Below are positions 4,134-41,576 of a stretch of DNA of 64,000 nucleotides, in pieces (within the stretch, counting starts at the first letter, position 1; each line of letters opens with the position of its first letter). The notes beneath the pieces were generated by a model. It made no database searches, was not told the origin of the DNA, and worked only from the letters and a program-made list of their open reading frames with translations. Location: positions 62,001 to 126,000 of the IMG/VR virus record IMGVR_UViG_3300017991_005548; one strand, written 5' to 3'. The position numbers and the translations under genes were made by a program.

Positions 4134-5149
4134 AATCTTTCTCCTTTTACTCTTTCCTTTTCGTACCCTAACCAAACTTTCCAACTTTTCCAGCCTCTAT
4201 CTTTATAAGTCCTATCTGGCACACTTGGTAAACAAACAGGTCTAGTATTTTCTTTCCAATATAAACACCATTCTGTTTTGCTTCTTATTCCCAATTTATG
4301 AACGAATTTTTCTGCTTCTTTATAAGGCATAAACCCACTTTTTGCAACTTTTATACTCCCCAAATCATAAAATTTGTTCTTTTTCCTTATTAAAAATAAA
4401 TTCGAAGGAGTGTTATACATATATTCTCTTAAAAGTATCGAACTGTTCTTAGCCACCCTAACTCTATAATACTTCTCTTTTAAACTTCTAACATTCCCCC
4501 TAAAACCATTTATATTTTCTTTTAATTTTAATAACAAACCATATGAGAACTTCTCACTTCCACTAGTAAGAGATGATTCTATGGAGTTCCTAGATATAGA
4601 TACATTACCGTCTCCGTCCCATAGCCCTCGTATAAAATCTGGCAGAAATTCTTCTGGAACATTAGGCATTTCACATGTCAGGCTTTTTCTCTCAGTTCCA
4701 CCTATTTTTTTAATTGATTCAACTAAATTTCTACAATAAATGTTCAAATGACAATATTTGCTTCTTGTCTCTTTAATGGGTCCATCAAAACCCATCGTTT
4801 TTGCGATTAACTCTAATAGATATTTATCTTTATTACTTTGCGTAATTGAAAACAAACTTTCATAAATACACCCATCTGCCCACCAAAAACCCAAAATATA
4901 CGCCATATCATGAGTCCATATCTCAAAGAAATCCTCATTTATCGAATATTTATCTCTTTTATAGGACATCTTTTTATACCCCATCCAATCCATGTACGAA
5001 ACCCATTCCGACTTATATACTTGATGAGGACTGCGAGGAATGAATGGAGGTCTGTTGTTTTTACACCAATCTTCCCATTCTGACTGCTTTTTAAGACCTA
5101 ATTGACGTACATATTGTCTTGCTTCTTCAAATAACAGGAATTTACTCAT
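4130..5149 (-). mobile_element. free-standing LAGLIDADG homing endonuclease with terminal integrase-repeat-like domains
   Basis: YILGFWWADG and FIRGLWDGDG motifs; N- and C-terminal F/YxEA(R/E)xxVxxLG...EW repeats. Confidence 0.85.
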
Positions 5150-5178
5150 TTCTTACTCTCCTTAAATGTTTTCGTCAT

Positions 5179-5247
5179 TTAATTCAAATAATTATGCACT
5201 TTATCCTGCGATTGACCCAACATTTTTCCGATGATTGCTCCGATCAT
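5179..5247 (-). pseudogene. relic 5' end of the ARH gene (MIGAIIG...)
   Basis: RBS AAGGA + ATG ATC GGA GCA ATC ATC GGA matches ARH N-terminus VIGAILG; ORF then diverges and stops after 22 codons. Confidence 0.6.
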
Positions 5248-5274
5248 AGTCTTTGTCCTTGTATTAAATCGATA

Positions 5275-5619
5275 TTACCAAGCGGCTTTTATTGTATGAT
5301 TTCCCTCGGCATCATATGTGATTTGTTGCCAATAACCAGATGAGTCTGTATGGAGAATAATCCTACCCAAAACATCGTATGACCAATACTGCCATGCTCC
5401 ATTATAGAAATCAATCCTTACGCATTGTTTCTTATCATTATATGATCTTCTGTGCCATTCCCCTTTGGAATTATTGTAGGCTATCCAAAGCCCTGCTTTA
5501 TCATACTCTTTGGTTTCCCAAACTCCATTATCATGGACATCTCGTATGATTTGCCCCCCATCTTTCGTTCTTGTTACAAATGAAGGCATGTTGTTACCTC
5601 TTTCGTAAAGGCGTTGCAC
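5275..5619 (-). CDS. hypothetical protein with short YD-like repeats
   Basis: Repeats EYDKAG / SYNDKK / SYDVLG / TYDAEG. Confidence 0.6.
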   Translation of the reverse strand: MQRLYERGNNMPSFVTRTKDGGQIIRDVHDNGVWETKEYDKAGLWIAYNNSKGEWHRRSYNDKKQCVRIDFYNGAWQYWSYDVLGRIILHTDSSGYWQQITYDAEGNHTIKAAW

Positions 5620-5651
5620 ATCATTATTCTAAAAGCCGAATAGGGAATCCT

Positions 5652-6755
5652 TTATCGGTGATCAGCCATCTCTTTCAGAATTCTTGAGAACCAAAGTTTT
5701 CTTGAAAATTCCCAAGCTTCATTTTGGGTTTCTTCGTTCTCATCTTTAACAGAAAAAGAACCCATTGGTATCCTTGCGGCTCCTGCACCCATTTTTCCGC
5801 CACCATGTTCTTTCCCAAAAATCTTTTTACAGATCTTATCAACATCAATGGCCAGTCCGCTACTTCTAACACTGACTTCCAGGTTATCTCCGACAATAGC
5901 AACAATAAAAGAAGTGTCAATACCCTCGACTCTAGCTCTTTCTTCAGCTATACTTGGAAGGGCATCTCTTTTTGCAGGGGTTATGTAACCAATTCCTCCA
6001 AGAAACACTCCATTCTCTGAAATAGCATGTCCGTCATGGTCCAATCTTTTTCTAAGATCAAAATGATATGGTGGAATTGGATAGTTGATGATTTTAGCAA
6101 GCATTTTTTGATCTGTAACAACAATCAAGCTCTTATACGCATCAAAATCGAGATCTGTAACGACATCTGTAACTAAATCGCACGTATCTGTCTTAATGCC
6201 AATTAACAATGCTGTTGCAACATTAGAATCTTCTTCTGACATTTTGTCGAACTCTATTTTAGCCTGCATCATGTATTCCCATACAATCGTGGAAGCAGAG
6301 CCGACACTTCTAATGTCTTTTAATTTTGCCTTCTTTGTATCACCTTTATGATGATCAATAACCAAAGTGTAGACTGCATTGGGTATTGCGCTCCTTTCTG
6401 GAATGGTATCTACACAAACATATATGTCGGCAAAATTCTCAACATCTTCAGGAGTTTGAAGTTCCCCCTCAACCTCATCAACATGCGTTAACTGAAGATT
6501 AAGAACATTAATCATAGTTTTGTTTTGGGGATGGGAAATCTCTCCACTATAAATCAAAGAAACTCTAGCTTCTGGAAGCCAACTTCTGATAAGTCTTTTG
6601 AGTCCATATGCAGATCCGATACAGTCTGGGTCTGGACAGGAATGCATTGTTATTGCAATATGAAGTTGATGATTTGCCTCAAAAACCTCAAAAAGTTCAT
6701 CTTTGAACTGATCTGCAATATGGTCAACATTCTTTACTTCTTCTTTTTCATCCAT
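5652..6755 (-). CDS. DHH/DHHA1 family phosphoesterase (NrnA-like)
   Basis: HxxPDPD, DHH, GIKTDT, SVRS, GGG motifs. Confidence 0.9.
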   Translation of the reverse strand: MDEKEEVKNVDHIADQFKDELFEVFEANHQLHIAITMHSCPDPDCIGSAYGLKRLIRSWLPEARVSLIYSGEISHPQNKTMINVLNLQLTHVDEVEGELQTPEDVENFADIYVCVDTIPERSAIPNAVYTLVIDHHKGDTKKAKLKDIRSVGSASTIVWEYMMQAKIEFDKMSEEDSNVATALLIGIKTDTCDLVTDVVTDLDFDAYKSLIVVTDQKMLAKIINYPIPPYHFDLRKRLDHDGHAISENGVFLGGIGYITPAKRDALPSIAEERARVEGIDTSFIVAIVGDNLEVSVRSSGLAIDVDKICKKIFGKEHGGGKMGAGAARIPMGSFSVKDENEETQNEAWEFSRKLWFSRILKEMADHR

Positions 6756-6827
6756 CTTCTTCTCCTTAATAAATAGAAAACGACTCCTACATTGGTTAAT
6801 ATAGGAGTCGTTTAGGATAAGTCAAGC

Positions 6828-7025
6828 TCAGGAAACAACTAAATTTTCAGATTCTTCTGACTCGTTTTCAGCCAGTAAATTCTCTTTACACTCTTCGCAA
6901 ATTCCATGCGACAGCATAATTAGTCGATCCTCTACATAATGATCCACTTCATGCGTAGAAATGCTGATAGTTTTTCTGCACCAAGCGCATCCAACTACAA
7001 TCGTTTGTAAGTATATGTCTTTCAT
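6828..7025 (-). CDS. small Cys-rich hypothetical protein
   Basis: CAWC...SHGICEEC. Confidence 0.6.
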   Translation of the reverse strand: MKDIYLQTIVVGCAWCRKTISISTHEVDHYVEDRLIMLSHGICEECKENLLAENESEESENLVVS

Positions 7026-7071
7026 TTTTATTCCTACACATAGTGGGGTTAGTTTTCTTCCATTAGGGTAT

Positions 7072-14018: not shown

Positions 14019-14360
14019 TTAGTCAGCCAAAACAACCAGCATGTGGTCATCATCAAAAATCTCAACATTATCTATGACAATATAGTGAGTATCTTGTTTG
14101 ATAAACTCTTCTAATAATTGAGAAGCGATGTGATGTAGTCCATCGTCAGTAATGAAATAGGAAAATTCCTGTATTGATCTCACTACATCAATTTCATCTG
14201 AGAATTGGATGAGAATTTGGAATAATTTCGGGACATCTTCATGAGAGATGTCGAATTCTTGAGTGAGATTTTTCGTTCTGACCCATTTTAGGAACTCAAC
14301 TTTGAAATTTTCGTCCCTTTTGTGTTTAAGTATGGTGACATGAGGCATTTTACCACTCAA
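14019..14360 (-). CDS. hypothetical protein
   Basis: ORF track. Confidence 0.5.
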   Translation of the reverse strand: MSGKMPHVTILKHKRDENFKVEFLKWVRTKNLTQEFDISHEDVPKLFQILIQFSDEIDVVRSIQEFSYFITDDGLHHIASQLLEEFIKQDTHYIVIDNVEIFDDDHMLVVLAD

Positions 14361-14898
14361 TCGCTTTCGTAAACTTAACGTTGGTCTCTGATTTCAGTCT
14401 TTTCCGTAGTTTTGAAAAATCTTCTCTGCCAGTCCCAGGTCTTCTTTCATAATGATATTCCACAAACATCAAATCGACATAATGAATTGATCCTTCGTTT
14501 AGCATATGGTAGAGGATATCGTATTCAGCACCCTCTATATCCATTTTTACGACAATGTAGTCATCTGGAGAGAAATTATCTTTAATCCATTTGTCAAAAT
14601 CGATACACTCAATAGTTCGTTTCTTCTCTCTTCTTGGTTTACTTGGGTTAGGAAAGACACTATTGGCCTGACCATATACCCTTCCGCTTGCATAAAAAGA
14701 AATTTCGCCATCAAAAGTCCATAGTGCTTTATTAAAGAAGGTAATATTCTTCTTTTTCATCTCTTCATCGTGATTATCTGGCATTTTATTTGGGTCAAAT
14801 GCAAAGAATTCAAAAGAGTCATCGTATTCTGGCCTTTTTTTAAAAAGCCTAATACCTTTACCTCTATAATATCCACAATCTATAAAAATTTTTCTCAT
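14350..14898 (-). CDS. FkbM-family methyltransferase
   Basis: IFIDCGYYRG, FDPN, VKMDIEGAEY. Confidence 0.8.
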   Translation of the reverse strand: MRKIFIDCGYYRGKGIRLFKKRPEYDDSFEFFAFDPNKMPDNHDEEMKKKNITFFNKALWTFDGEISFYASGRVYGQANSVFPNPSKPRREKKRTIECIDFDKWIKDNFSPDDYIVVKMDIEGAEYDILYHMLNEGSIHYVDLMFVEYHYERRPGTGREDFSKLRKRLKSETNVKFTKAIEW

Positions 14899-16304
14899 TG
14901 TTTCACCTCTACCTCATTATACAAAAGGTCTTTATATGCCCTCAAAAGCTTCAGTTTATTTTCTTTGCCTATTGTCCAGTTTGCATGAAACGTTTTTATT
15001 GGGTAATCGGGCAAAGGTATTTTACCTCCATCATAATGAACTTCATTTGTGACTCTCCATACGGAAAAATACTCTTTGGGAAGCTGACAGATTTTAAATT
15101 TAGTCTTCATTTTTTTTCGAAAAGTTCTCAAAGCATTATCCATGTTATCTTGGTCATCTCTACTGGAATCATAAACCTGTTCATAGTAATCAAAGAAACT
15201 CCGAACTCTATCGGTAACTCTTGCGGCGAACAAACCAGTACAATGTATGTAGTTAGAATCCATTTGAAACACCATATCACTACCCGTTAAATGTTTTTCA
15301 ATATCTTTGCGAATACTATTGAGAAATAGTACATCTACGTCTGAAAACAATACATAATCATTTTTTGATGACCTGAACTCTTCTATTATTTTTGAAGCTT
15401 TTAGCCGAGTAACATCAAACCACCCAGATTTATAATAGTCACCACATGAACCTTTTTGATCTATTTCAACAAATTTTAAGTCATATTCATTCGCCAGGAA
15501 TTTATCGAACGATGGTTTGAAGAAATTTTTATAATAATCTAAATGTGATTTTGATGCAACGGCGAATAATATAGGTTTTATTATCTCTCCATCTGAGGTC
15601 CTCCTAAAAACGATCCTATGACGGTCCAAGATGCCCTGAGTTCTATACTTTTTGCCACAAATATCCTCTTTAATCAATGCCGCTGGCCCTTTATACGAAT
15701 CGCTCAGCCCTCTATAGTTTCTTATATTGGAAGCATGATGGTGTATGGCTTTAATATGTGGGTAACCGTTTTTCATTTCTAAACCAGCGAACTGCGCCTC
15801 ATATGCAAAGGAACTTTCGCAGTTTCCTTTACCAAGAAGAAAGTCACAATCGAATTTTATCATGGGAGTCTTAAAAGCCCATGCGTCATGAGAATATCTA
15901 GGGTCAACTCGGAAAAGTGAACCTTCTGGAGTTCGATAGTTTTTGGGGCTGGAAATTTTACCGTTTTTTAACATGTCATGTCTAGTGATAACAACAATCA
16001 GATTATTCCAATCCATTTTTTCAAGAAAGTTTAGTGATTGATCAAAGAAGATGTCATTATTTGCTAACAGGAAGATGTCATTTGTACCCATTTCGTTAGC
16101 GAACTTGATAGCATCAGAATATTGCAACCTTTGGCCTATAATTATTTGACATATCTTGTCTGAGCTAAAGGAATATTTTGTTTCATTTAGCAAATATATC
16201 TTTGATATAAATGGATTATCAACATTTCGTTGCAATGTCTCGTCAATTTCTTTTTGACGATCAGGATCTTTATCCACATAGTATTGGCAAATGAGATTAA
16301 TCAT
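14895..16304 (-). CDS. two-domain glycosyltransferase-like protein (C-terminal nucleotide-diphospho-sugar transferase)
   Basis: LANNDIFFD in N-domain; LFSDVDVLF...FQMD...CTGLF...DDQ in C-domain. Confidence 0.65.
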   Translation of the reverse strand: MINLICQYYVDKDPDRQKEIDETLQRNVDNPFISKIYLLNETKYSFSSDKICQIIIGQRLQYSDAIKFANEMGTNDIFLLANNDIFFDQSLNFLEKMDWNNLIVVITRHDMLKNGKISSPKNYRTPEGSLFRVDPRYSHDAWAFKTPMIKFDCDFLLGKGNCESSFAYEAQFAGLEMKNGYPHIKAIHHHASNIRNYRGLSDSYKGPAALIKEDICGKKYRTQGILDRHRIVFRRTSDGEIIKPILFAVASKSHLDYYKNFFKPSFDKFLANEYDLKFVEIDQKGSCGDYYKSGWFDVTRLKASKIIEEFRSSKNDYVLFSDVDVLFLNSIRKDIEKHLTGSDMVFQMDSNYIHCTGLFAARVTDRVRSFFDYYEQVYDSSRDDQDNMDNALRTFRKKMKTKFKICQLPKEYFSVWRVTNEVHYDGGKIPLPDYPIKTFHANWTIGKENKLKLLRAYKDLLYNEVEVKQ

Positions 16305-16406: not shown

Positions 16407-17366
16407 ATGGCAGATAAAATATTTGATGATTATCATGGACCATCTATTAAAATAAATGGAGTTTGCTATAAGTGGATAGGCGAAACAACTGCTTCAAAGA
16501 ATGCAGAACCATCTGATATTGGTGGTTTTTATGATTCCTGTTTAGAATGTAATTTAGAATCAAGTTCTTCAAGTTCTGAGGGTCCACCTGCGCAACGGTC
16601 AGTAAGGCTTGGACCGTCGCAAACTGGCTGGGGTGGTTATCTGGGATACTCAGGAGGGATTATTTCCCCATATGACGAGCCAGACGATTTGAGCGGCCAG
16701 CAGGTTGCATATTCTATTTGGCTTAAGGTTGATGGAGGGGTTGGGTATGTAATGAGTGAGTTCGACAGTAGCTCTAATTTTGTCAATGGGATATACGGTG
16801 CTGGTAACGGTTGGGGGCCGAGATGGGCATGGCCAGGAAATCTTGATAGCGGTATTGGCGGAATCGCTGATAATCTGCCAGGGAACTGGAAACACGTTTT
16901 CTGTGGGTTTTTGCCAGACCAACCCCCAGATGTAGACAACAACGCACGAAAAGTCTATCTATGGGAAGATGGTGTCCGAAAAACCCGACCTGCACATCAG
17001 TATTTTGGGGATGACCAACCTGAAGCCGCCAACTCCTACTTGGGAAATTGGGGAGGAAAAGTGATAGCGTGTTGTTTTGGTGTTTGGAAGTTCGCCACTC
17101 AATTGACACTGTCTGAGATGGATGACATGGCGAGTTATCTCCGAAACAGTGGTGACGCTTTCTTATATGAGGACATGGTTTCAGATGGCGGTTCAGATTT
17201 ACATCTAACTGATTTAGTCCACTTTTACAATCTGAATGAGTATAGTGATGGAAGTACTGCGGTAACAAGAGAAGATAAGGTTGGAAACAAAGATTATATT
17301 GCATATGAGGGAGGTGGGTCTATAGAAGGCTATCCAGTATCTTCAACCGACTTCCCATCATCTTAA
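16407..17366 (+). CDS. repeat-family protein 1 (shared Cys N-domain, Ser linker, LamG-like C-domain)
   Basis: IFDDYxGPSIKINGVCYK...C..C.ESSSS N-terminus; YSIWLK...WKHV...W C-domain. Confidence 0.65.
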   Translation: MADKIFDDYHGPSIKINGVCYKWIGETTASKNAEPSDIGGFYDSCLECNLESSSSSSEGPPAQRSVRLGPSQTGWGGYLGYSGGIISPYDEPDDLSGQQVAYSIWLKVDGGVGYVMSEFDSSSNFVNGIYGAGNGWGPRWAWPGNLDSGIGGIADNLPGNWKHVFCGFLPDQPPDVDNNARKVYLWEDGVRKTRPAHQYFGDDQPEAANSYLGNWGGKVIACCFGVWKFATQLTLSEMDDMASYLRNSGDAFLYEDMVSDGGSDLHLTDLVHFYNLNEYSDGSTAVTREDKVGNKDYIAYEGGGSIEGYPVSSTDFPSS

Positions 17367-17376
17367 GGAGTAAATC

Positions 17377-18690
17377 ATGGCAAACAGAATATTTGACGAT
17401 TATCAGGGACCATCTGTAAAAGTAAATGGTGTCTGTTATAAATTTATAGGAGAAACAACTTCTTCTGTAAATTCATACCCAACTCAAATCCAAGGAACTT
17501 TTGACTCTTGCCTAGAGTGTGCTTTAGAAAGTTCATCTTCTGAAAGTACTGTATCTTCGTCTTCAGAATCATTTGATAATGTAAGTACATCTTCAGAATC
17601 AATCAACAATAATTCATCTTCAAGTTCATATATTTGTGAGAACGCAGAAGTTAATCAAGTTGTTCCAGCTTTTAATCAAATAACAATTACACCTCCAACT
17701 TTATGGAGTTCTCAGTTCCCAACAGGTAAAGTTTGTGTTGATGAAACTCATGAAGGAAATTATGAAAACCATGGTGCAGTTGATTTAATCACTTTTGATA
17801 ATGAGGGAGCGGCAAGTACTTTTTCTTCTGGACAATCCATTCAAGTGTGTGAGGGACCATGCCCTCCTGTTTCCAGTAGTTCAAGTTCTGAAGGATATTC
17901 TGAATCAAGTTCTTCAAGTTATGTTCCACCTGATTTAACAGGAAGGTCGATATATGTGGGCAACGGCAACTCTCTTACCCAATTAGATCCAGTTGTTGGA
18001 GATCTTTTGGAAGATCCAGCTACTCAAGGAAATCAAATCGTCTGGGGTGGATGGTTCCAAGGGTTACAGGGTTCAAGTGGAGCATATTGGTTTTGGATAG
18101 AGAATGAATGGAGATTAGGAAAAGATGTCGCTGGAAACTCTCAATCATATGTTCGTTTAAATGGAGAGTGGCAATGGTCAAGACCTGCAAGTGGCCCCGC
18201 AAGAGGTGGTTGGCAACACTTAATGTGGTCATGGACCCCTTATTCCAATGAAGATGGTGGAATAGCTCAATATGCTTCTTATTGGAATGGGCTTGCATGG
18301 ACCCCATATAGAACTTTTAATGGAACTTTCTCATTCACGAATCCTGGTGGAGGAACAATATTCTATGATACAGAACCCAATTTTGGGATAAGGGCTACTG
18401 GTGTAGGAGTTTGGTCATTTCCTTATGAAAGTCAAATGACCAGAGCACAGATAGCCTCTTGGTGTACTAGTATGAAAAACGATTATACAACTATAAATTA
18501 CTATAATATGAATGAAGCAACTTACAAGAAAAGCAATATTATTCATTTTTGGAATTTTAACGAACCTAGTGATGGAAGTTCTCCAGTAACAAGATATGAT
18601 GTTGTAGGAGAAAAACATTGGACAGATAATGACAATGGTAGTGGATATGTAACTAGTGCTACAGTAATCCCAACAGAAGTTCCATCTTAA
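17377..18690 (+). CDS. repeat-family protein 2 (LamG-like C-domain)
   Basis: Same N-domain; GGWF...WQHLMWSW...HFWNFNE. Confidence 0.65.
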   Translation: MANRIFDDYQGPSVKVNGVCYKFIGETTSSVNSYPTQIQGTFDSCLECALESSSSESTVSSSSESFDNVSTSSESINNNSSSSSYICENAEVNQVVPAFNQITITPPTLWSSQFPTGKVCVDETHEGNYENHGAVDLITFDNEGAASTFSSGQSIQVCEGPCPPVSSSSSSEGYSESSSSSYVPPDLTGRSIYVGNGNSLTQLDPVVGDLLEDPATQGNQIVWGGWFQGLQGSSGAYWFWIENEWRLGKDVAGNSQSYVRLNGEWQWSRPASGPARGGWQHLMWSWTPYSNEDGGIAQYASYWNGLAWTPYRTFNGTFSFTNPGGGTIFYDTEPNFGIRATGVGVWSFPYESQMTRAQIASWCTSMKNDYTTINYYNMNEATYKKSNIIHFWNFNEPSDGSSPVTRYDVVGEKHWTDNDNGSGYVTSATVIPTEVPS

Positions 18691-18700
18691 GGGGTAAATT

Positions 18701-20044
18701 ATGGCTAACAGAATATTTGATGACTATCAAGGAGCATCCGTTAAAATAAACGGCATTTGCTACAAATTTATAGGGGAAACTACACGTTCTGTAAATTCTC
18801 AACCTCAAGAAATTGAAGAAACTTATGATAGTTGTTTAGCTTGTGCTATTGAGTCAAGTTCATCAGAAAGTACTCAGTCTTCCAGTTCAGAATCAATTGG
18901 AAATACTAGTTCATCTTCTGAATCATTTGGTAATGAGTCATCTTCAAGCTCTCAACCATGTGTTGATTGCGAGATATCTATTATTTCAATTGCGGGGAAT
19001 AAATTGTGGATTTCTCCTCCAACAATTTTTATCTCTGGAACGATCCCCTCACCTAGCCCAGTTTGTGTTGATGATATTTATGAAGCAAATTATAGAAACA
19101 TGGGAAATGAAGATGAGATTGAATTTGTAGGTGCTGGAGTGGCGAGTAAATTTTCTGTTGGACAAATTATTGAAGTTTGCGAAGGTAATTGTGTTGGAAC
19201 TAGTTCTTCAAGCTCTGAAGGATATTCTGAATCAAGTTCTTCAAGTTATGAGCCACCTGCACAACGTAGCGTCAATGTTGTAAGAACGGATGGCTCTACA
19301 GTCAATCGTGGCAGGATTATATATGATGGTGGACCACTCGCATCACCGACAGAACATTGGACACAGCAAGGAACGCAGAAGATCTATTCAATATGGTCTC
19401 GCTGGACTTACGTATCCAATGTTTGGAACTACACAGAAAGCGGCTCAGCCCCTTTAGTCAATTTTGGGACTGGAAACTTCTCAGCCCGTCAGATGCGCGT
19501 TGGCTTAGCCAACCTTACGATGTATAACTCAGTAAGGATAAGTGGTGATAATAGTTTCCAGTGGTATCATGCTCTTTATGCATGGACACCAATAGGCGTT
19601 TGGCATGATGACTACATGTTGGCCTACCGTGATGGCAATGTAGGCTTCAAGTTCCCAGACAGCAGAAATACAGAACTTACATCTCCTGCCGCTACTACGT
19701 GTATATTGGGGGCAGGAGGAGGACCTAGTCACTACTGTTGTATGGGCATGTGGGACTTTCCATATGGTGATCACCTTTCTAAGGCAGAAGTTCAGGCTTT
19801 AGCTGTTTACCTTTATAATGGCGGCACTGCATTACAATATGAGAATCTGAGTGATGTTCCAGCGTATTTAGACAACATGACACATTTCTGGAATTTAAAT
19901 GAGTATTCTGATGGCACATCGCCTGTGACTTACGAAGATAAAGTTGGAAATGCCGACTTCATAGGTGACCTATCGCCAGCATCCCCTGAGTATGGCCCCT
20001 TTAGCACCTACCCGATATCAACAACAGACTTCCCATCATCTTAA
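18701..20044 (+). CDS. repeat-family protein 3 (LamG-like C-domain)
   Basis: Same N-domain; YSIWSR...WYHALYAW...HFWNLNE. Confidence 0.65.
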   Translation: MANRIFDDYQGASVKINGICYKFIGETTRSVNSQPQEIEETYDSCLACAIESSSSESTQSSSSESIGNTSSSSESFGNESSSSSQPCVDCEISIISIAGNKLWISPPTIFISGTIPSPSPVCVDDIYEANYRNMGNEDEIEFVGAGVASKFSVGQIIEVCEGNCVGTSSSSSEGYSESSSSSYEPPAQRSVNVVRTDGSTVNRGRIIYDGGPLASPTEHWTQQGTQKIYSIWSRWTYVSNVWNYTESGSAPLVNFGTGNFSARQMRVGLANLTMYNSVRISGDNSFQWYHALYAWTPIGVWHDDYMLAYRDGNVGFKFPDSRNTELTSPAATTCILGAGGGPSHYCCMGMWDFPYGDHLSKAEVQALAVYLYNGGTALQYENLSDVPAYLDNMTHFWNLNEYSDGTSPVTYEDKVGNADFIGDLSPASPEYGPFSTYPISTTDFPSS

Positions 20045-20073
20045 GGAATAAATTATGACAAAAGGAATAAATT

Positions 20074-20766
20074 ATGGCTAACAAAATATTTGATGATTAC
20101 CAAGGGCCATCTATTAAAATAAATGGAGTGTGCTACAAGTTTATAGGTGAAACTACAGAACCCTTCGACTCTAACCCAAGTGAAATTGAAGGAGAATTTG
20201 ACTCATGCCTTGCTTGTGCTTTAGAATCTAGTTCTTCAAATTCATCTGAAAGTATAGGTAACTTTTCAACATCAAGTTCAAGTAGCTCAAGCGAAGTGCC
20301 TGTTGTTCTTGGAAATGGAGAAACAGTAGATGTTGATGAAGTCCTTGGTGCAGGACATTATGGAAGGGTTCAAATCACTTATACTGGAGATCCTACTCCA
20401 CCCAACGCCGCTGGTGTTGTGACAGTAAACAATGTCAGCTACAACATAGCCAATGAAGATCCTGATTTTGCTTGGGATTACGACGATGCACAAAATGGTA
20501 GGCATGTGTTCACAGTTATTGGAGAGACTATCCACAGAACGGCTGATGGTAAAGAGTTTTCGGTAACTTGGGATGGTACTGGTAGTATAATCTTTACGGT
20601 AGATGTTGAAGACATTAACAAGTCAAGCAGTAGCTCAAGTTCTTCAAGTTTTGATGATTTTAAAGCGTGGAATGATTTCGCTACTGATGGGCCAAAACCT
20701 AAGACTTGGGCAGACATGAGTAATAGTGGTGACTATCCAAGAACCTGGTCTGAACTACAAAGTTAA
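20074..20766 (+). CDS. repeat-family protein 4
   Basis: Same N-domain, different C-domain. Confidence 0.6.
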   Translation: MANKIFDDYQGPSIKINGVCYKFIGETTEPFDSNPSEIEGEFDSCLACALESSSSNSSESIGNFSTSSSSSSSEVPVVLGNGETVDVDEVLGAGHYGRVQITYTGDPTPPNAAGVVTVNNVSYNIANEDPDFAWDYDDAQNGRHVFTVIGETIHRTADGKEFSVTWDGTGSIIFTVDVEDINKSSSSSSSSSFDDFKAWNDFATDGPKPKTWADMSNSGDYPRTWSELQS

Positions 20767-20775
20767 GGAGTAAAA

Positions 20776-21480
20776 ATGGCACAAATATTAGATACAGATT
20801 ATGTTGGTGATAGTTTAGATAAACTATTATTGAATTCAAATACAACAGTAAATTTAACAAGTTCTCAAACTGCTACTCAAATACAAGCTGAGATTAATGC
20901 ACAACCTAAGAATTTGAATGGTTACGACCTGACATTTCAGTTTGCAGATGGGACTTATGCGCTGGATGCGGCATTGACGTTTAAGGGATTCCATGGTGGG
21001 ACATTTAAAATATATGGTAATGCTTCTGATAATAGTCTATCAACTTCGAAATCGGTTGATTTAACTTTCAACAACAACACTAGCGGGATAATTGTGGACT
21101 CATGTTCGCGAGTAGAAATCTACTACTGTGATATCAGTCATAACACAGATGTTAATACAACATATGGTGTGCATGCTACAGATATCCCAGATATATATGT
21201 CAGGTATTGTTACATTCATGGGAACAGCAATGTTCGTGGCTCAAATGCTCAGTTTTTACGATCACTCGGCGTATTTCGTGATAACTATGTCAGCAACGTT
21301 CAGTATGCCTTATTTGTAGCAAATTCAGCAACAATATACTGTCAAAATTGTGACGATACTGGAACTCAGCCTGCGTATGGTTTGTATTCAGTCGGAGCTT
21401 CAACAATTGGAAAAAACGGTACTCAACCATCTGGAAGCACCGCCAATGAAAGTTCTGCATCTGGCGGCGTAATCCGATAA
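20776..21480 (+). CDS. beta-helix-like paralog 1 (possible fiber/depolymerase module)
   Basis: DYVGDSLDKLLLN...QPKNLNG..LTFQFADGTY...GFHGG...DDTGTQP...GGVIR. Confidence 0.6.
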   Translation: MAQILDTDYVGDSLDKLLLNSNTTVNLTSSQTATQIQAEINAQPKNLNGYDLTFQFADGTYALDAALTFKGFHGGTFKIYGNASDNSLSTSKSVDLTFNNNTSGIIVDSCSRVEIYYCDISHNTDVNTTYGVHATDIPDIYVRYCYIHGNSNVRGSNAQFLRSLGVFRDNYVSNVQYALFVANSATIYCQNCDDTGTQPAYGLYSVGASTIGKNGTQPSGSTANESSASGGVIR

Positions 21481-21498
21481 ATAAGGAGATTTTTTCAA

Positions 21499-22200
21499 AT
21501 GGCAGTTATACAAGATAGTGATTATGTTGGAGATTCATTGGGGAAGTTGTTGTTAAATGAGAATACTACAGTAAATCTCAATTCTTCAATGAGTGCTAGT
21601 GAAATTCAGGGGTTAATTGATGGTCAGCCTAAGAATTTGAATGGATTTAATTTAAATTTTCAATTTGGTGATGGAACATATACGTTGGATAGTCAGCTTT
21701 TATTTACTGGATTTTTTGGAGGAACTGTTCGTGCATATGGTAACTCATCTGACAATTCTTTGAGTACCAGTAAGAATGTAGTGCTTAACTTCAACAGCAA
21801 TTCAGAAGGTGTTATTGCAAGTAAATGTATGGATTTTGATGTTCGATATATGGAAATCTCAGTACAATCAAGTTCCAATTTTCGCAGATGCACTTATGGG
21901 ATTGCTTGTCCTAGATTCAATGTTTTGTATTGTTATTTGCGAGGGAATTCTACATCTTTAGGTGCCTCAATATATGTAAGTCATGGCACATCATATACTT
22001 CAGGCAACTATGTGTCGAATATCCAGAATGGTATTTATGCGGGTTGGTGTTCGAAAATTGGCAGTGATGGGAATGATGATACAGGTACTCAACCAGCATA
22101 TGGGTTGTATGCTCTTGGTGGTGGTGTTATAGCAAAAAATGGGACACAGCCTTCAGGTAGCACAAATGAAGGAACAGCAACTGGTGGGGAGATTCGATAA
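21499..22200 (+). CDS. beta-helix-like paralog 2
   Basis: Same conserved termini. Confidence 0.6.
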   Translation: MAVIQDSDYVGDSLGKLLLNENTTVNLNSSMSASEIQGLIDGQPKNLNGFNLNFQFGDGTYTLDSQLLFTGFFGGTVRAYGNSSDNSLSTSKNVVLNFNSNSEGVIASKCMDFDVRYMEISVQSSSNFRRCTYGIACPRFNVLYCYLRGNSTSLGASIYVSHGTSYTSGNYVSNIQNGIYAGWCSKIGSDGNDDTGTQPAYGLYALGGGVIAKNGTQPSGSTNEGTATGGEIR

Positions 22201-22898
22201 TGGCTACAATTTCAGAAAGTGATTATGTAGGGGATTCGTTAAGTAAGTTGCTCTTAAATGAGAATACAACAGTAAATTTAAATAGTTCGATGAGTGCTAC
22301 TCAAATACAAGCAGAGATAGATGCTCAACCTAAGAATTTGAATGGTTTTGATTTAACGTTCAAGTTTGCGGATGGTACATACACGCTGGCTTCTGGTTTG
22401 ACTTTTAGCGGATTTCATGGGGGGCAAACACTCATCAACGGAAATGCTTCTGACAATACCCTGTCTACCACCAAATCTGTATTTTTGGATGCAGATGGTG
22501 CTACTGGGGAGAATGCTATTACAGTTGAAGAGTGTGACCTCGTTTACATCCAGTACTTAAAAATAGAATTTGATAGTGCTACTGGTAGGGGCGTTAGGCT
22601 AAGGTCTTCGAATTTCTATGTTGATGCGTGTTACATTTTAGGAGATAGCACATCAAATGGTGAATGCATACAGGCTGATTATGGCGCAGGAGCGGTAAGG
22701 CGTTGCTATTTAAGTAACGCGGAAAATGGAATCAGGGCAACTTATGGATCTTGTGGATCAATTGACAACGATGATACAGGTACGGCTCCAGCATACGGTT
22801 TATATGCCTTGTATGGAGCAACGATTGGGAAAAGTGGTACGCAACCCTCTGGATCGACTGCAAACGAGCAAGCTTTCGGTGGCGGCGCAATCCGATAA
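22200..22898 (+). CDS. beta-helix-like paralog 3
   Basis: Same conserved termini. Confidence 0.6.
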   Translation: MATISESDYVGDSLSKLLLNENTTVNLNSSMSATQIQAEIDAQPKNLNGFDLTFKFADGTYTLASGLTFSGFHGGQTLINGNASDNTLSTTKSVFLDADGATGENAITVEECDLVYIQYLKIEFDSATGRGVRLRSSNFYVDACYILGDSTSNGECIQADYGAGAVRRCYLSNAENGIRATYGSCGSIDNDDTGTAPAYGLYALYGATIGKSGTQPSGSTANEQAFGGGAIR

Positions 22899-22916
22899 AT
22901 TTAAGGAGATTTTCAA

Positions 22917-23024
22917 ATGGCACAAATATTAGATACAGATTATGTAGGTGATAGTTTAGACAAATTGTTATTGAATCCGAATACAACAGTAAAAGGAACA
23001 GCAACTGGAGGAGTAATAAGATAA
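22917..23024 (+). pseudogene. internally deleted beta-helix paralog (35 aa)
   Basis: MAQILDTDYVGDSLDKLLLNPNTTV fused in frame to KGTATGGVIR; RBS AAGGAG kept. Confidence 0.7.
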
Positions 23025-23746
23025 TGGGTGGACCAAATATTCAAACAAGCGATTATGTAGGTGATAGTCTTGATAAGTTGATCCTTTCAAATAACAAGAC
23101 TGTCAATCTCGACAACTCAATGAGTACAAGTGAGATTCTGGCGTTAGTGAATGATCAACCTCGCAATCTTAATGGCTACACTCTGACGTTTCAGTTTGCA
23201 GATGGCACCTACAATTTGAGCAATACATTGGACTTCCGAGGGTTTCATGGCGGAACTTTGTATATCCATGGGAATACAAGTGAAACTGATGCAACCGTTA
23301 AGCATACTACTCAGCAAGTCCATCTTAATGGCGCTTCAGTTGATGGGAATGTCATATTTGTATTTAGTTGTCAAAGTTACATCCAGATAAGGAATTTGAA
23401 GGTAACAGTTAAGGATTACAACAATGCAGGTGGGATCGTTGTACAAGGCTGTTGTCAAATTTTCATCCAATACAATTATGTTGTTGGTAGTGGGAAGTCA
23501 AATGCGAGGGCGGCAATTAGAGTTGATACATCGATTGGTGGAGTTTATTCGAATTATGTGAGCAATATTCCTTATGGGATTGATTGTAATTTCGGAAAAA
23601 TTTATTCTTATGACAATGATGACACTGGGACTCAACCTAACTATGGGCTGTTAGCTGGCTCTGGTGCAACAATTGGAAAAGGAAGTACTCAACCAACTGG
23701 TTCAATATCCAATGAAACAACAGGAAATGGAGCAGTGATAAGATAA
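23024..23746 (+). CDS. beta-helix-like paralog 4
   Basis: Same conserved termini. Confidence 0.6.
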   Translation: MGGPNIQTSDYVGDSLDKLILSNNKTVNLDNSMSTSEILALVNDQPRNLNGYTLTFQFADGTYNLSNTLDFRGFHGGTLYIHGNTSETDATVKHTTQQVHLNGASVDGNVIFVFSCQSYIQIRNLKVTVKDYNNAGGIVVQGCCQIFIQYNYVVGSGKSNARAAIRVDTSIGGVYSNYVSNIPYGIDCNFGKIYSYDNDDTGTQPNYGLLAGSGATIGKGSTQPTGSISNETTGNGAVIR

Positions 23747-23856
23747 TGACACAGATATTAGATACAGATTACGTTGGTGATAGTTTAGATAAGTTGTTAT
23801 TGAATTCAAATACAACAGTCAATTTAACATTAAAAGCAAAAAGGGAAAAGACATGA
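23746..23856 (+). pseudogene. truncated beta-helix paralog (36 aa)
   Basis: MTQILDTDYVGDSLDKLLLNSNTTVNLT then unrelated tail. Confidence 0.65.
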
Positions 23857-24041
23857 ATACATTTATAGCACGAAAGGATAACGGTGATAAAATTTCCTTC
23901 TTAGAAGGAAATTTTAAACTTGGTGGATTAAATCCAGAATATGAAGCAAAGTATTGTGATTGTGATGAGAACACAACCAATACTTCGGAAATCGCAGATT
24001 GGGACACCGCTTTGGATGTGTCATATGTAATTGATGAATAA
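23853..24041 (+). CDS. hypothetical protein
   Basis: ORF track, ATGA-coupled. Confidence 0.4.
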   Translation: MNTFIARKDNGDKISFLEGNFKLGGLNPEYEAKYCDCDENTTNTSEIADWDTALDVSYVIDE

Positions 24042-24233
24042 GAAGGAGAGACAATAAAATGGGCGCTTTTATTATTTGTTTATTGTTAATTGGTCTCCTA
24101 ATACTAATTTGTAATTTATTAACACCAAAACTCATTGTTGTTACAAAAGCGGCAAAACTAGAAAGACGTTTTAATAATTATAGGCAAATTATTTTTCTTT
24201 TAGAGATAGAAGATAATTAATTAGGAATAAATT

Positions 24234-25706
24234 ATGGTAAACAGAATATTTGACGATTATCAAGGACCATCCATTAAAATAAATGGAGTCTGTTATAAAT
24301 GGGCTGGGGAAACAACTGAACCCTTTAATTCTCACCCCAGTGAAATTGAAGGAACTTTTGATACTTGCTTGGAATGTGCAATAGAAAGTTCTTCAAGTTT
24401 GTCTTCTGAATCTGAGTCCTCTGAATCAATTAATAACTTTAGCTCTTCTTCTGAATCAATTGAAAATACTTCATCAAGTGAATCAATTGCATGTCAAGAA
24501 GGAGATATCCAATTTGTGCTAAGTCAAGCAAACGCATTACAATTCTCTCCCCCAGTATTTCAAGGAGCCATTGACGAAGGAATTGTTTGTATTGATGGAA
24601 TTCGAGAGGGAACTTACACAAACTATGGGCAGGAAGATCTTATTGTTTTGAGTGACCCAGGAGCTTATGTGAATTATACTGCTGGACAAACTGTTGAAGT
24701 TTGTGAAGGGCAATGTCCTCAAGTTTCAAGTTCTTCAAGTTCTGAAGCATATAGTTCAGAGAGTTCAAGTAGTTCGTTCCCTGAAGGTATATTCTTAAAA
24801 ATGGAATACGATGCAAGTACGAGTCTTACAACACAGCTTCGATTCGATAATGTAATTGATTACGGAGATGCTATTATATATTGGGGAGATGGAGATACTA
24901 CTGATATTAGTGGTACTGGGAACGGTACAGAAAACCATGTTTATGATTCTAGTGGAACCTATGAGGTTAAAATAAGTGCTACTGGCAATTTTTGGTTAGG
25001 ACAATCTACCACTACTTCATATCGAACAGGGTATAAAAAAATTACCCAATGGGGAGATGTAAAATGGTCCAGATGTGATTTCTCCTTTGCCAACCTTCCA
25101 GACCTAGAGGTGACAGCAACAGATTATCCTGATTTATCAAATGTAACAGATGTTAGATATATGCTTGCTGGTTGTACGAATATGGTTGGAGACCAGCATG
25201 ACTGGGCATGGGATATGACAGGAGTAACTGATTTAAGCCACATGTTTCAGAATTCTCTTGCTTTTAACGGCACTGTTCAAAACTTTAGCAACATGGGAGA
25301 TGCAGAGAACCTGTCGTTCATGTTTGTGGGGAATGGCAGAAGTAATCCTGGTTCGTTCAATCAACCGATTGGAGTTTGGGATACATCTAGTGTAACAGAT
25401 ATAACTCAAATGTTACAATATCAGCCTGATTTTGATCAGGATTTATCAAACTGGGATGTTAGTAACGTGACAGATACTGCTCAATTTATGGAGAATTTTG
25501 GTGTTGAAGAGTTATCAAATGCAAACTATAACGCACTTCTGATTTCATGGGGTGGACAATCATTAATCTCTCATGGCGATACTATTTCTTTTGGAAAAAG
25601 TAAGTATACAGATGACAGCGGAGATTGCCCAAGTTGTCCTATTACAACAGGCAGAAGTGCTATAGCGGCGGCATGGGGTACATTACGAGATGGTGGGTCT
25701 GTTTAA
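24234..25706 (+). CDS. repeat-family protein 5 with PKD-like and BspA/DUF285-like repeats
   Basis: Shared N-domain; IYWGDG...HVYDSSGTYEV; FNQPIGVWDTSSVTD...FDQDLSNWDVSNVT. Confidence 0.7.
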   Translation: MVNRIFDDYQGPSIKINGVCYKWAGETTEPFNSHPSEIEGTFDTCLECAIESSSSLSSESESSESINNFSSSSESIENTSSSESIACQEGDIQFVLSQANALQFSPPVFQGAIDEGIVCIDGIREGTYTNYGQEDLIVLSDPGAYVNYTAGQTVEVCEGQCPQVSSSSSSEAYSSESSSSSFPEGIFLKMEYDASTSLTTQLRFDNVIDYGDAIIYWGDGDTTDISGTGNGTENHVYDSSGTYEVKISATGNFWLGQSTTTSYRTGYKKITQWGDVKWSRCDFSFANLPDLEVTATDYPDLSNVTDVRYMLAGCTNMVGDQHDWAWDMTGVTDLSHMFQNSLAFNGTVQNFSNMGDAENLSFMFVGNGRSNPGSFNQPIGVWDTSSVTDITQMLQYQPDFDQDLSNWDVSNVTDTAQFMENFGVEELSNANYNALLISWGGQSLISHGDTISFGKSKYTDDSGDCPSCPITTGRSAIAAAWGTLRDGGSV

Positions 25707-25716
25707 GGAGTAAATT

Positions 25717-26307
25717 ATGGCTAACAGAATATTTGATGATTATCAAGGAGCATCCGTTAAAATAAACGGTATTTGCTATAAATTTATTGGAGAAACAACA
25801 AGACCATTTGATTCTCATCCAAGTGAAATTGAAGGAACTTTTGATACTTGTTTGGCATGTGCTGTTGAAAGTTCATCTTCAGAAAGTACCCAGTCTTCCA
25901 GTTCTGAATCAATTAATAACTTTAGCTCTTCTTCTGAATCAATTGAAAATACTTCATCAAGTGAATCAATTGCATGTCAAGAAGGAGATATCCAATTTGT
26001 GCTAAGTCAAGCAAACGCTTTGCAATTTTCTCCCCCAGTATTTTTCGGAGTTATTCCAGAAGGAACCGTTTGTGTTGATGGGGTACATGAAGGAACTTAT
26101 ACAAATTATGGTGGAGAAGATTTAATTGTTTTTAGTGATTCAGGAGCTTATCAAAGCTATACTGATGGACAAACCATTGAAGTTTGTGAAGGGGTTTGTT
26201 TGCCACAAGCAGTTTATAAGTATAGCAATCTACAACTGAATGTATCACCAAACACATATAGATATACTCCAGTTATAATTGAGTCAAGTTCATCAAGTTC
26301 AGGATAA
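25717..26307 (+). CDS. repeat-family protein 6
   Basis: Shared N-domain; ~110 bp near-identical to protein 5 (24421-24535 vs 25904-26018). Confidence 0.6.
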   Translation: MANRIFDDYQGASVKINGICYKFIGETTRPFDSHPSEIEGTFDTCLACAVESSSSESTQSSSSESINNFSSSSESIENTSSSESIACQEGDIQFVLSQANALQFSPPVFFGVIPEGTVCVDGVHEGTYTNYGGEDLIVFSDSGAYQSYTDGQTIEVCEGVCLPQAVYKYSNLQLNVSPNTYRYTPVIIESSSSSSG

Positions 26308-26322
26308 ATTTTAGGAGGATTT

Positions 26323-26805
26323 ATGGATTTATATTTTTTACAAGACCAAGGAGACGCTTTGGTTTATAATGACGGAATTGCATATGAGTTTGTTGAGCAA
26401 ACAGTTCAAGTCCCAAATGCAAGTGGAGCGCAAGTTATTGAAGGAAACATCTCTTCATTTAATTTCAGCATTGCTGACGCACAATTAAAAACAGCTTACA
26501 CTGCTGGTGAACATGCTTTGGCTTTTTATGTTGATGAAAATAAAATTGAAGTTGACATGCCCCTTGCCAACACTTGGTATACTTTCCCCGATGTTCCAGT
26601 TGCAGGAGTTATTCGGGTTTGGCAAACGGGAGCATTTTACCCAAACATAAAAATTAATGGTATTGATCAGGCCGTTAACGCAGGAACAAGCAAAGCTAGT
26701 GCAATGCCATACAATGTTGCTGTTGGAGATGTAATCGAAATACGAGAACCAACTACTAGTGGAAACACTGGGTACGGATATATATTGCCATTTGTTTATC
26801 CATAA
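26323..26805 (+). CDS. hypothetical beta-rich protein
   Basis: ORF track, RBS AGGAGG. Confidence 0.55.
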   Translation: MDLYFLQDQGDALVYNDGIAYEFVEQTVQVPNASGAQVIEGNISSFNFSIADAQLKTAYTAGEHALAFYVDENKIEVDMPLANTWYTFPDVPVAGVIRVWQTGAFYPNIKINGIDQAVNAGTSKASAMPYNVAVGDVIEIREPTTSGNTGYGYILPFVYP

Positions 26806-26826: not shown

Positions 26827-26856
26827 AAAAAAGGGTGGACTAAGTCCACCCTTTAA
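26827..26856. terminator. probable bidirectional terminator
   Basis: AAAAAAGGGTGGAC-TAA-GTCCACCCTTT between convergent genes. Confidence 0.75.
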
Positions 26857-39729: not shown

Positions 39730-39735
39730 ATATTT

Positions 39736-41325: not shown

Positions 41326-41331
41326 TGATTT

Positions 41332-41419: not shown

Positions 41420-41428
41420 AAATTTTGA

Positions 41429-41562: not shown

Positions 41563-41576
41563 GTCTTGTCAAATTT

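Follow-up and report, generated by a model that had tools for sequence, protein, structure and literature searches.

Background

Some bacteriophages carry many receptor-binding proteins, as in the branched, multi-protein systems of Klebsiella phages, including the jumbo phages RaK2/phiK64-1, in which each protein has a conserved N-terminal anchor or docking peptide and an exchangeable C-terminal glycan-recognising head, heads are exchanged both horizontally and within a genome, and the genes sit in tail-fibre gene blocks (PMC6872550, PMC13352976, PMC10253068). Comparable one-module-to-many-heads designs are found outside of phages, for instance in cellulosome-type assemblies, where dockerin-bearing enzymes sit on a scaffoldin with repeated cohesins, and in the polyserine-linked carbohydrate-active enzymes of marine polysaccharide degraders (PMC2386152, PMC2699552). 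Capsid decoration proteins such as T4 Hoc and T5 pb10 join a small particle-binding domain to exposed adhesive domains that are dispensable for assembly, while in chaperone-usher pili and in split-domain covalent pairs such as SpyTag/SpyCatcher an incomplete domain is completed by a strand supplied by another polypeptide. Long Ser-rich tracts carrying lectin-like binding regions are a feature of the serine-rich repeat adhesins of Gram-positive bacteria, and glycosylated fibrils are found on giant viruses.

Here we consider six neighbouring genes in a 64,000-nucleotide stretch (the window, in whose coordinates positions are given unless stated otherwise) of an uncultured phage of roughly 0.5 Mb (IMG/VR record IMGVR_UViG_3300017991_005548, positions 62,001 to 126,000). 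An earlier note, made from the sequence alone, had claimed that these genes share a Cys-containing N-terminal adaptor and Ser-rich linkers with swappable C-terminal domains, and had inferred a disulfide-stabilised family of adhesins or capsid-decoration proteins docking through the common adaptor. Our analysis confirms the observation itself, whereas the interpretation is supported only in part.

Results

The six genes lie on the + strand at 16407-17366, 17377-18690, 18701-20044, 20074-20766, 24234-25706 and 25717-26307, and all begin with the same module of about 52 residues (the N-module). M1, Y9, G11, C20, Y21, C45, L46 and C48 are among the columns that are invariant across the six, and they stay invariant across all 17 copies that we found in the 296-kb genome record; a 476-kb record of the same phage has 19. 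The family, with at least 19 paralogues in the phage and spread over three loci, is thus larger than the earlier note had seen. A tblastn search with the module of gene 1 scores the copies at E 4e-38 to 1e-19. The tandem layout is not an assembly artefact, as error-free unitigs of a public sequencing run bridge the gene junctions (16444-17916, 17894-19243, 19221-20803 and 20775-22400).

Gene 1 (319 aa) consists of the N-module (16407-16562), a short Ser linker and a LamG-like type A C-domain. Gene 2 (437 aa) has the N-module (17377-17532), poly-Ser, a second module of about 80 residues, which is a four-Cys beta-barrel (module 2, about 17629-17868), poly-Ser and again a LamG-like type A C-domain, and gene 3 (447 aa) follows the same order, with the N-module at 18701-18856, module 2 at about 18956-19195 and a LamG/ConA-like C-domain. 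Gene 4 (230 aa), which has exactly three Cys in all, has the N-module (20074-20229), poly-Ser, an unassigned middle domain of about 100 residues, poly-Ser and a short tail. Gene 5 (490 aa) has the N-module (24234-24389), poly-Ser, module 2 (about 24486-24719), poly-Ser, a PKD-like motif and then DUF285/BspA-like repeats, and gene 6 (196 aa) has the N-module (25717-25872), poly-Ser, module 2 (about 25969-26202) and a short tail. Module 2 is thus present in genes 2, 3, 5 and 6 (E 1e-33 to 1e-39) and absent from genes 1 and 4.

The earlier note had listed LamG-like (three), PKD/BspA-like or other domains as heads. The C-domains of genes 1-3 are homologous to each other (E 1e-11 to 3e-25), and that of gene 3 looks LamG/ConA-like by Atlas features (0.97) and by structure (TM 0.66-0.68 to LamG_3 clusters), though none of the three matches Pfam LamG (PF13385) at E <= 0.1; paralogues in the other cluster do reach the Pfam model (42 bits against a cut-off of 27.6). 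Gene 5 matches DUF285/BspA-like repeats (PF03382) with 75.1 bits against a cut-off of 25. In contrast, no PKD family is found in gene 5 at E <= 0.1, and only a PKD-like motif can be read in its sequence. Across the family at least 7 unrelated C-terminal architectures follow the one N-module. The block linking genes 5 and 6, which the note had described as near-identical over about 110 bp and as a sign of recent shuffling, is an exact identity of 116 nt (24420-24535 and 25903-26018) inside a region that is otherwise 70-87% identical, and is a trace of recent gene conversion across linker 2 and the start of module 2.

The surroundings of the six genes show further duplication. Between genes 4 and 5 lie four co-oriented, paralogous right-handed beta-helix-like proteins of about 233 aa (+ strand, 20776-21480, 21499-22200, 22200-22898 and 23024-23746; PF13229, 27.7 bits), whose N- and C-termini are conserved. 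A 35-aa remnant of a paralogue of these (+ strand, 22917-23024) has the conserved N-terminus fused to the conserved C-terminal heptapeptide, and a second truncated remnant lies at 23746-23856. The + strand block is closed by a 160-aa ORF (26323-26805) that has two paralogues at the equivalent place in the other cluster, and whose N-terminus may be a Cys-less relative of the N-module (hhalign probability 50%). A hairpin with an 11-bp stem (26830-26854), called as a terminator-like site on the - strand, separates the end of this block from the convergent - strand gene. On the other side are two divergent - strand neighbours, a 469-aa nucleotide-diphospho-sugar transferase (14895-16304; PF03407, 40.9 bits) and a 182-aa ORF (14350-14898), which provide a context for possible modification of the Ser tracts. 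Ser-rich tracts occur in 13% of the genes of the genome, and the five tRNA-Ser genes (anticodons GGA, TGA, CGA and GCT twice; - strand, 39638-43136) among the 34 tRNA genes of the window, a full tRNA-Ser set, match this Ser-rich proteome.

Over the 52 codons of the N-module synonymous sites are near saturation (pS 0.66) while nonsynonymous differences are much fewer (pN 0.23), so the module is old and constrained. AF2 predicts it to be an independent fold of three strands and a C-terminal helix, with pLDDT 92 when modelled alone; within gene 6 both modules are above 90, while the linker is below 50 and predicted to be disordered. The recurrence of the module is far from chance, as a profile of it finds only 92 proteins at E <= 1e-3 among 1.84 billion representatives. 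In 74 of these the module starts at residue 1-8, and 53 of 70 of these have at least 30% Ser in the 25 residues after C48. No known relative was found: the N-module has no Pfam or PHROGs hit, whether to the anchors of known receptor-binding proteins (T7 gp17 N-terminus, T4 gp10-like branching domain), to decoration proteins, or to CBM10 or dockerin-type small docking modules, the last of these being absent also from the N-termini of the giant Ser-rich proteins; a PDB profile search gave E >= 0.44, and the best fold matches were Z 2.0 and Foldseek E 4.9.

Covariation of the cysteines implies two disulfides. In a few large proteins the module occurs as internal tandem repeats, and these internal copies carry an upstream Cys (C0) if and only if they carry C48 (15 with both, 5 with neither). 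In contrast, 73 of the 74 N-terminal copies keep C45xxC48 without C0, as the N-terminal form lacks the first strand and its Cys, which would leave C48 unpaired. In agreement with this, 55 of 78 N-terminal-type proteins have an odd number of Cys, and 18 have exactly three.

In two small siphophage-like contigs (JAPOGW010000577.1 of GCA_029935835.1, and Ga0180433_10003050 of JGI 3300018080) the gene order is tail chaperones, tape measure protein (PHROG E 7e-38 and 2e-44), two conserved genes, a Ser-rich protein and then two N-module genes, meaning that the latter lie in the tail-tip block, 3-4 genes after the tape measure gene, though the two conserved genes could not be identified as distal tail or tail-tip proteins. 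The paralogous head next to P0053 matches a PHROG annotated as a virion structural protein. In the megaphage the picture is less clear. One member (G000 158494-160632) lies in a run of giant Ser-rich, propeller/Ig/LamG-type ORFs, but the window cluster sits among non-structural genes (transferases, tRNAs, chaperones), and tail sheath and baseplate-J families were not found in the 296-kb record, so that no link to its tail genes is shown. The clusters lie 120-200 kb from the portal and the capsid candidate.

Discussion

The explanation that we favour, with moderate confidence, is that the family is a kit of virion-borne, tail-associated adhesins or receptor-binding proteins. In this view the shared N-module would fix every member to the same kind of site on the particle, one or two disordered poly-Ser tethers, in about half the copies with the four-Cys spacer between them, would give reach, and the interchangeable head, of a kind that binds or cuts glycans (LamG/ConA-like, GH54-like, right-handed beta-helix, BspA-type repeats or an FG-GAP propeller), would set what is bound. 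The architecture, the copy number, purifying selection on the module, its N-terminal position across metagenomes, its place in the tail-tip blocks of two small phages and the lack of any known relative come directly from the analysis. What we infer is the disulfides (C20-C45, and C0-C48 in the complete repeat form), the unpaired C48 of the N-terminal form, presence in the virion with attachment to the tail, and the docking itself. No signal peptide or hydrophobic N-terminus is visible in the sequences, so release would be by lysis or on the virion. Known receptor-binding proteins are usually trimeric fibres or spikes with structured shafts, for which floppy poly-Ser tethers are unusual, and the internal tandem repeats show that the module is not only an anchor. 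Of the claims of the earlier note, modularity and recent shuffling are supported, disulfide stabilisation fits the covariation of the cysteine pairs, an anchor role fits the module being the first domain, followed by a disordered Ser tether, in 74 proteins, and of its two options the gene context favours a tail-associated adhesin over capsid decoration.

Capsid decoration, with the N-module binding the capsid lattice as the capsid-binding domains of T4 Hoc or T5 pb10 do and the heads forming a mixed lectin coat on a very large head, nevertheless remains possible, if unlikely. Many different proteins sharing one binding site would suit a surface with hundreds of equivalent sites, the giant Ser-rich proteins could form a fibrous coat, and the megaphage clusters are not demonstrably next to tail genes. 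However, in both small phage contigs the genes are not beside the capsid gene present on the same contig, the megaphage clusters are far from the portal and capsid candidate, and there is no PHROG or Pfam match to decoration proteins. Equally unlikely is that these are free glycan-binding or glycan-processing proteins acting on host capsule or biofilm after lysis, with the N-module itself a carbohydrate-binding module. The order of small Cys module, poly-Ser and catalytic or lectin domain is that of the polyserine-linked enzymes (PMC2386152, PMC2699552), the heads include GH54-like and beta-helix domains, and the internal arrays resemble arrays of binding modules, but there is no Pfam match to any CBM, including CBM10, and no signal peptide, the position in tail morphogenesis blocks and the near-universal N-terminal placement are left unexplained, and the conserved Cys inferred to be unpaired is not expected for a CBM.

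An intracellular role, such as in host takeover or as a metal-binding regulatory domain with the three Cys binding zinc, is very doubtful. CxxC at a helix start plus a Cys in a hairpin recalls zinc knuckles, the weak best fold hit is the zinc domain of N-Ada, and the window cluster lies among non-structural genes. However, a Z of 2.0 is noise, zinc ribbon or treble-clef folds need four conserved ligands where the N-terminal form has three Cys, natural two-Cys variants keep only C20 and C45, losing C0 and C48 together as expected for a disulfide pair rather than for zinc ligands, and neither the extracellular lectin, repeat and propeller types of the heads nor the tethers and the tail-block position fit. 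That the shared 5' end is kept only by recombination or for expression, as the gene conversion and a conserved ribosome-binding region (the repeat begins 11 nt upstream of the start codon) might suggest, is contradicted by the near-saturated synonymous sites, the conservation of the module in many unrelated metagenomic proteins and its high-confidence predicted fold.

A more speculative possibility, which we consider improbable but not excluded, is split-domain docking on a phage "scaffoldin". The N-module would be a truncated form of a four-Cys repeat domain that has lost its first strand (motif N-aromatic-x-Y-x-x-C, where the Cys is C0). Matching orphan islands of about 10 residues are embedded in the poly-Ser of giant proteins encoded beside family members: 8 in a 2527-aa, 49% Ser protein, 2 in a 4276-aa, 52% Ser protein, and 1 in the 785-aa protein encoded directly upstream of a family member, and each of the two small phages has 2 in the Ser-rich protein whose gene overlaps the first of exactly two N-module genes. 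Each island would complete one N-module by strand insertion and lock it through a C0-C48 disulfide once the particle is in an oxidising medium, giving long flexible serine fibres studded with different lectin heads. If real, this would be a new way for a virus to assemble a changeable binding surface, and a natural peptide-tag and catcher pair of possible use in protein engineering.

Host recognition is the least understood part of very large uncultured phages. The N-module is a previously undescribed putative anchor domain that marks a whole class of candidate adhesins in metagenomes, one that has expanded to 19 copies in a single phage genome, and the abundance of Ser-rich genes, including two proteins that are about half serine, together with the tRNA-Ser set and the nearby transferase genes points to an unusual virion make-up.

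The known systems each resemble the family in part. The serine-rich repeat adhesins and giant virus fibrils share the long Ser-rich tracts with lectin-like regions, and glycosyl-, sulfo- and methyl-transferase genes lie near the family, but the six proteins have polar N-termini, with no signal peptide, LPXTG anchor or accessory Sec system. T4 Hoc and T5 pb10 are single genes per phage with Ig-like domains, to which we found no homology, and the gene context here is tail rather than head. With donor-strand complementation and SpyTag/SpyCatcher the resemblance is inferred only; the lock would be a disulfide rather than an isopeptide bond, and the fold is unrelated. As in cellulosomes and polyserine-linked enzymes, one small module is shared by many proteins with different functional domains, Ser-rich linkers are used, and there is a candidate scaffold with repeated sites in the 2527-aa protein with its 8 copies of one short motif, though there is no sequence match to dockerin, cohesin or CBM families, the proposed site is a strand of about 10 residues and not a folded cohesin, and the system is encoded by a phage and lacks signal peptides. 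The Klebsiella phage systems share the layout of a conserved N-terminal module and exchangeable heads, the horizontal and intragenomic exchange of heads, the many proteins per phage and, in the two small contigs, the tail gene block. Compared to these, the putative anchor is an unrelated 52-aa Cys mini-domain whose attachment is inferred, the shafts are replaced by disordered poly-Ser tethers, the heads are mostly lectin-like rather than trimeric depolymerase spikes, and the copy number of 19 is about twice that of RaK2.

Shared modules in the six genes

The six plus-strand ORFs singled out in the earlier note exist where it placed them and share their first ~52 residues, so that the observation itself is confirmed. 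In an alignment of all copies found in the genome record, M1, Y9, G11, C20, Y21, T27, P35, C45, L46, C48 and S52 are invariant. Genes 2, 3, 5 and 6 carry a second module of ~80 aa with four conserved Cys, and poly-Ser tracts separate all modules. The near-identical block of ~110 bp that the note saw in genes 5 and 6 is an exact identity of 116 nt (24420-24535 = 25903-26018), lying within a region that is otherwise 70-87% identical. Error-free unitigs from a public run bridge the gene junctions, and the tandem array is thus not an assembly artefact. No RNA run was found to hold the locus.

The cluster contains further signs of rearrangement. Between 20776 and 23856 there are four paralogous ~233-aa beta-helix-like proteins with strongly conserved N- and C-termini, together with two remnants, a 35-aa mini-ORF at 22917-23024 that keeps only both conserved ends and a truncated copy at 23746-23856, which are signs of deletion and recombination within the array. 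Additionally, a segmental duplication relates 24234-26805 of the window to 23027-25516 of the 296-kb record of which the window is part: the trio of a DUF285-headed member, a short member with only the N-module and module 2, and a 160-aa ORF occurs in both clusters. The 160-aa ORFs may start with a Cys-less relative of the N-module (hhalign probability 50%, E 1.7e-4). A 53-aa ORF with a strongly hydrophobic N-terminal half lies just upstream of gene 5 (24059-24220, +) and, judging from the sequence only, may be a small membrane protein. A small release-factor-like protein with a GGQ motif is encoded inside the other family cluster (20147-20548 of the 296-kb record, -) and is conserved in a related contig (L051, 5846-6226), where the relative matches Pfam RF-1.

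The phage genome

The window belongs to a 296,327-bp IMG/VR record that encodes a portal protein (PHROG E 2e-47), an HK97-type capsid candidate just under the Pfam cut-off, DnaB-like and other helicases, ClpB and DnaJ. This record, labelled as a provirus of 98% completeness, is only a fragment of a larger phage genome. A 476,248-bp IMG/VR record (IMGVR_UViG_3300018080_008436) is 99.99-100% identical over the five of six fetched loci that lie inside the 296-kb record, has matching gene positions at an offset of +212,353, and extends ~212 kb further; a 524-kb contig (ENA ERZ27256796 k141_941235) continues beyond the left end of the 476-kb record. Contigs of 523,871 and 524,692 bp carry the adjoining genes. 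The two assemblies differ in the length of a poly-Ser repeat near position 1-2000 of the 296-kb record. This is thus an uncultured phage of about 0.5 Mb, and the same strain is present in two sediment runs and one seawater run from three studies. The provirus label of the records is probably a pipeline call. We saw no host flank.

The genome is unusually rich in serine. Of 277 ORFs in the 296-kb record, 37 have Ser-rich tracts; one protein of 4276 aa (261791-274621, -) is 52% Ser, and one of 2527 aa, encoded in the 476-kb record (208568-216151, -), is 49% Ser. These mucin-like giant proteins look very unusual for a phage, and literature searches for serine-rich or polyserine features in huge or jumbo phages and in tail fibres found nothing relevant. 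The window alone holds 34 tRNA genes (2713-44105), of which two are tRNA-Cys and five are tRNA-Ser that cover both Ser codon families (39638-39729, 41332-41419, 41757-41843, 41852-41941 and 43051-43136), which fits a proteome of this kind.

Size and age of the family

The 296-kb record holds 17 copies, of which six are in the window, ten are at 11.8-25.5 kb on the other strand, and one, of 712 aa with an FG-GAP propeller, is at 158.5-160.6 kb; the 476-kb record has 19. The family is thus much larger than the six genes listed in the earlier note. Over the 52 module codons, the mean proportion of synonymous differences is 0.66 and of non-synonymous differences 0.23, and the copies are therefore old and the protein sequence is under purifying selection. 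Gene conversion is real, as the 116-nt block shows, but it does not explain the conservation.

The C-terminal parts fall into at least seven unrelated classes: LamG-like type A (window genes 1-3), Pfam LamG_3 type B (six tandem genes in the other cluster), a PKD-like motif plus DUF285 (gene 5 and one paralogue, 43% identical), right-handed beta-helix, FG-GAP propeller, a Cys-rich ~170-aa domain, and short tails in gene 6 and its paralogue. In the larger contig, a beta-helix head homologous to that of a family member occurs without the N-module, so that heads and anchor recombine.

Predicted structure and distribution of the N-module

AlphaFold2 with a 68-row alignment gives a confident model of the N-module (pLDDT 92), with predicted strands at 13-16, 19-22 and 38-42 and a helix at 45-52 that starts at the CxxC. 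In the model of gene 6, both this module and module 2 are confident and the Ser linker is disordered. We sought known relatives by several means. Pfam and PHROGs on the six proteins gave nothing for the N-module or module 2, tblastn of gene 2 against 50,697 GenBank phage records gave no match, and PDB sequence searches with the genes and with the module profile gave nothing below E 0.4. A fold search of the N-module model had a best Z of 2.0 and a best Foldseek E of 4.9, and thus assigns no known fold; only three unnamed clusters of viral proteins in the ESM Atlas share the shape (TM 0.65-0.70). Module 2 matches only the generic small six-stranded barrel (F1 crown, riboflavin synthase), with Z no higher than 7.4, within the noise range of the method, and has no specific relative. 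Hits in BFVD were spurious collagen-like rows.

A profile search of 1.84 billion representative proteins gives 92 hits at E <= 1e-3 and 45 at E <= 1e-10. In 74 of them the module begins within the first eight residues, and 73 of those keep C20 and C45xxC48. In 53 of 70, at least 30% of the next 25 residues are Ser. A few large proteins (1040-1616 aa) instead carry two to seven internal tandem copies, and two of the metagenomic proteins with tandem copies (P0023 and P0047) also share a region that contains a GDPH motif, which is found in autocleaving VWD-type domains. The carriers examined are phage-like contigs of 6 kb to 524 kb from sediment and marine samples.

Genomic context

Two contigs with classical siphophage-type tail modules are the most informative. 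In GCA_029935835.1 JAPOGW010000577.1 the order is a tail assembly chaperone, a tail protein (Phage_tail_T), the tape measure protein, a 318-aa gene, a 336-aa gene, a 434-aa Ser-rich protein, and then N-module genes of 129 and 522 aa. In JGI 3300018080 Ga0180433_10003050 the order is capsid, connector, tail terminator, chaperones, tape measure protein, a 315-aa gene, a 353-aa gene, a 349-aa Ser-rich protein, and N-module genes of 325 and 283 aa. The 315/318-aa and 336/353-aa pairs are homologous between the two contigs (E 3e-63 and 8e-56), though our searches yielded no name for either of these two conserved genes. This is the place where tail-tip and receptor-binding proteins are encoded in such phages, and for this reason we rank a tail-associated adhesin role above capsid decoration. 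In the megaphage itself the link to tail genes is not shown, since tail sheath and baseplate-J models find nothing in the 296-kb record. PHROGs and Pfam on the giant ORFs next to the 712-aa member gave only FG-GAP, BNR-like, Ig-like, LamG and LRR hints.

Inferred cysteine pairing and a possible partner

Internal copies are preceded by an extra strand with a Cys (C0), with the motif N-[YW]-x-Y-x-x-C, about six residues before the point where the N-terminal form starts. Among true internal copies, 15 have both C0 and C48 and 5 have neither; the four apparent cases with C48 only are mis-called starts, and one further case carries a compensating extra Cys. C20 and C45 are always present. Loss in pairs fits two disulfides, C20-C45 and C0-C48, better than a zinc site. 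The N-terminal form cannot have C0, yet it keeps C48 almost without exception, and 55 of 78 such proteins have an odd number of Cys, with 18 having exactly three, so that one conserved Cys is expected to lack a partner within the chain. Disulfides also argue for a role outside the cell, though all of this is inference from sequence patterns.

Inside the Ser-rich tracts of the giant proteins lie short conserved islands of the form TEN-[VI]-x-[FYH]-x-Y-x-x-C-[DEA]-L-F-T-E-S-I-S-S, with eight in the 2527-aa protein, two in the 4276-aa protein, and one, around residue 535, in the 785-aa protein whose gene (160646-163003 of the 296-kb record) ends 13 nt before the 712-aa family member. The first part of the island has the same pattern as the C0 strand. 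A scoring matrix built only from C0 strands of unrelated metagenomic proteins ranks three of the five islands in the 296-kb record at places 2, 5 and 10 among its 1188 cysteines. Rank 1 is a further C0-like strand (residue ~277) that follows a poly-Ser tract in a Ser-rich protein of 1075 aa (3810-7037 of the same record, -). That protein also holds a C0-less module 460 residues downstream (residues ~733-785), and a weak trypsin-like (NAL1-type) protease region lies between the two, which looks like a domain inserted into the module's first loop. The Ser-rich proteins of the two small phages each carry two such islands with the Y-x-x-C core, for example GNWEYRVC and NHGYVLC, and their genes overlap the start of the first of exactly two N-module genes.

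This suggests that orphan C0 strands on Ser-rich scaffolds capture the N-modules and complete their fold, possibly with a C0-C48 disulfide. The pattern is specific and recurs in three lineages, but the interaction is inferred from sequence alone and we consider this more novel docking mechanism an unlikely, though possible, reading. We also suspected that the N-termini of the giant Ser-rich proteins were dockerins, but Pfam did not support this and the idea was dropped.

A model for the family

The interpretation offered in the earlier note, a modular and disulfide-stabilised family of adhesins or capsid decorations docking through a common adaptor, is partly supported, and sharpened towards a tail-associated rather than a capsid role. 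Our analysis establishes a modular family with one conserved, independently folding N-terminal mini-domain (as judged from structure prediction), disordered Ser tethers, exchangeable glycan-type heads, and genes in tail-tip blocks of the small relatives. It is by inference that these proteins would be expressed and carried on the virion, held by the N-module at a common kind of site, and give the phage many different binding specificities at the end of flexible tethers, with duplication, head exchange and gene conversion renewing the repertoire.

Modification of the Ser tracts is possible, but is suggested only by neighbouring genes, as transferase genes recur next to family members or their relatives. 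These are a nucleotide-sugar transferase beside the window cluster (14895-16304, -), a further glycosyltransferase and a sulfotransferase in the 296-kb record (152257-153348 and 198750-200360), and sulfotransferase, GT8, methyltransferase and APS kinase genes beside relatives (contig L038, 15565-20010, and the contig encoding the metagenomic protein P0057).

Comparison with known systems

The architecture recalls polyserine-linked carbohydrate-active enzymes and cellulosome docking, but no such family matches. In function the family is closest to the multi-protein, branched receptor-binding systems of Klebsiella phages, including the jumbo phage RaK2 with ten adsorption-complex proteins (PMC10253068), where conserved N-terminal anchors or docking peptides carry variable heads (PMC6872550, PMC13352976). 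It is not a member of those families, as the anchor has no detectable relation to them, the shafts are replaced by poly-Ser, and attachment is only inferred. The layout of shared anchor and variable head is thus of a kind already known from these phages, whereas the anchor domain is new to the libraries searched.
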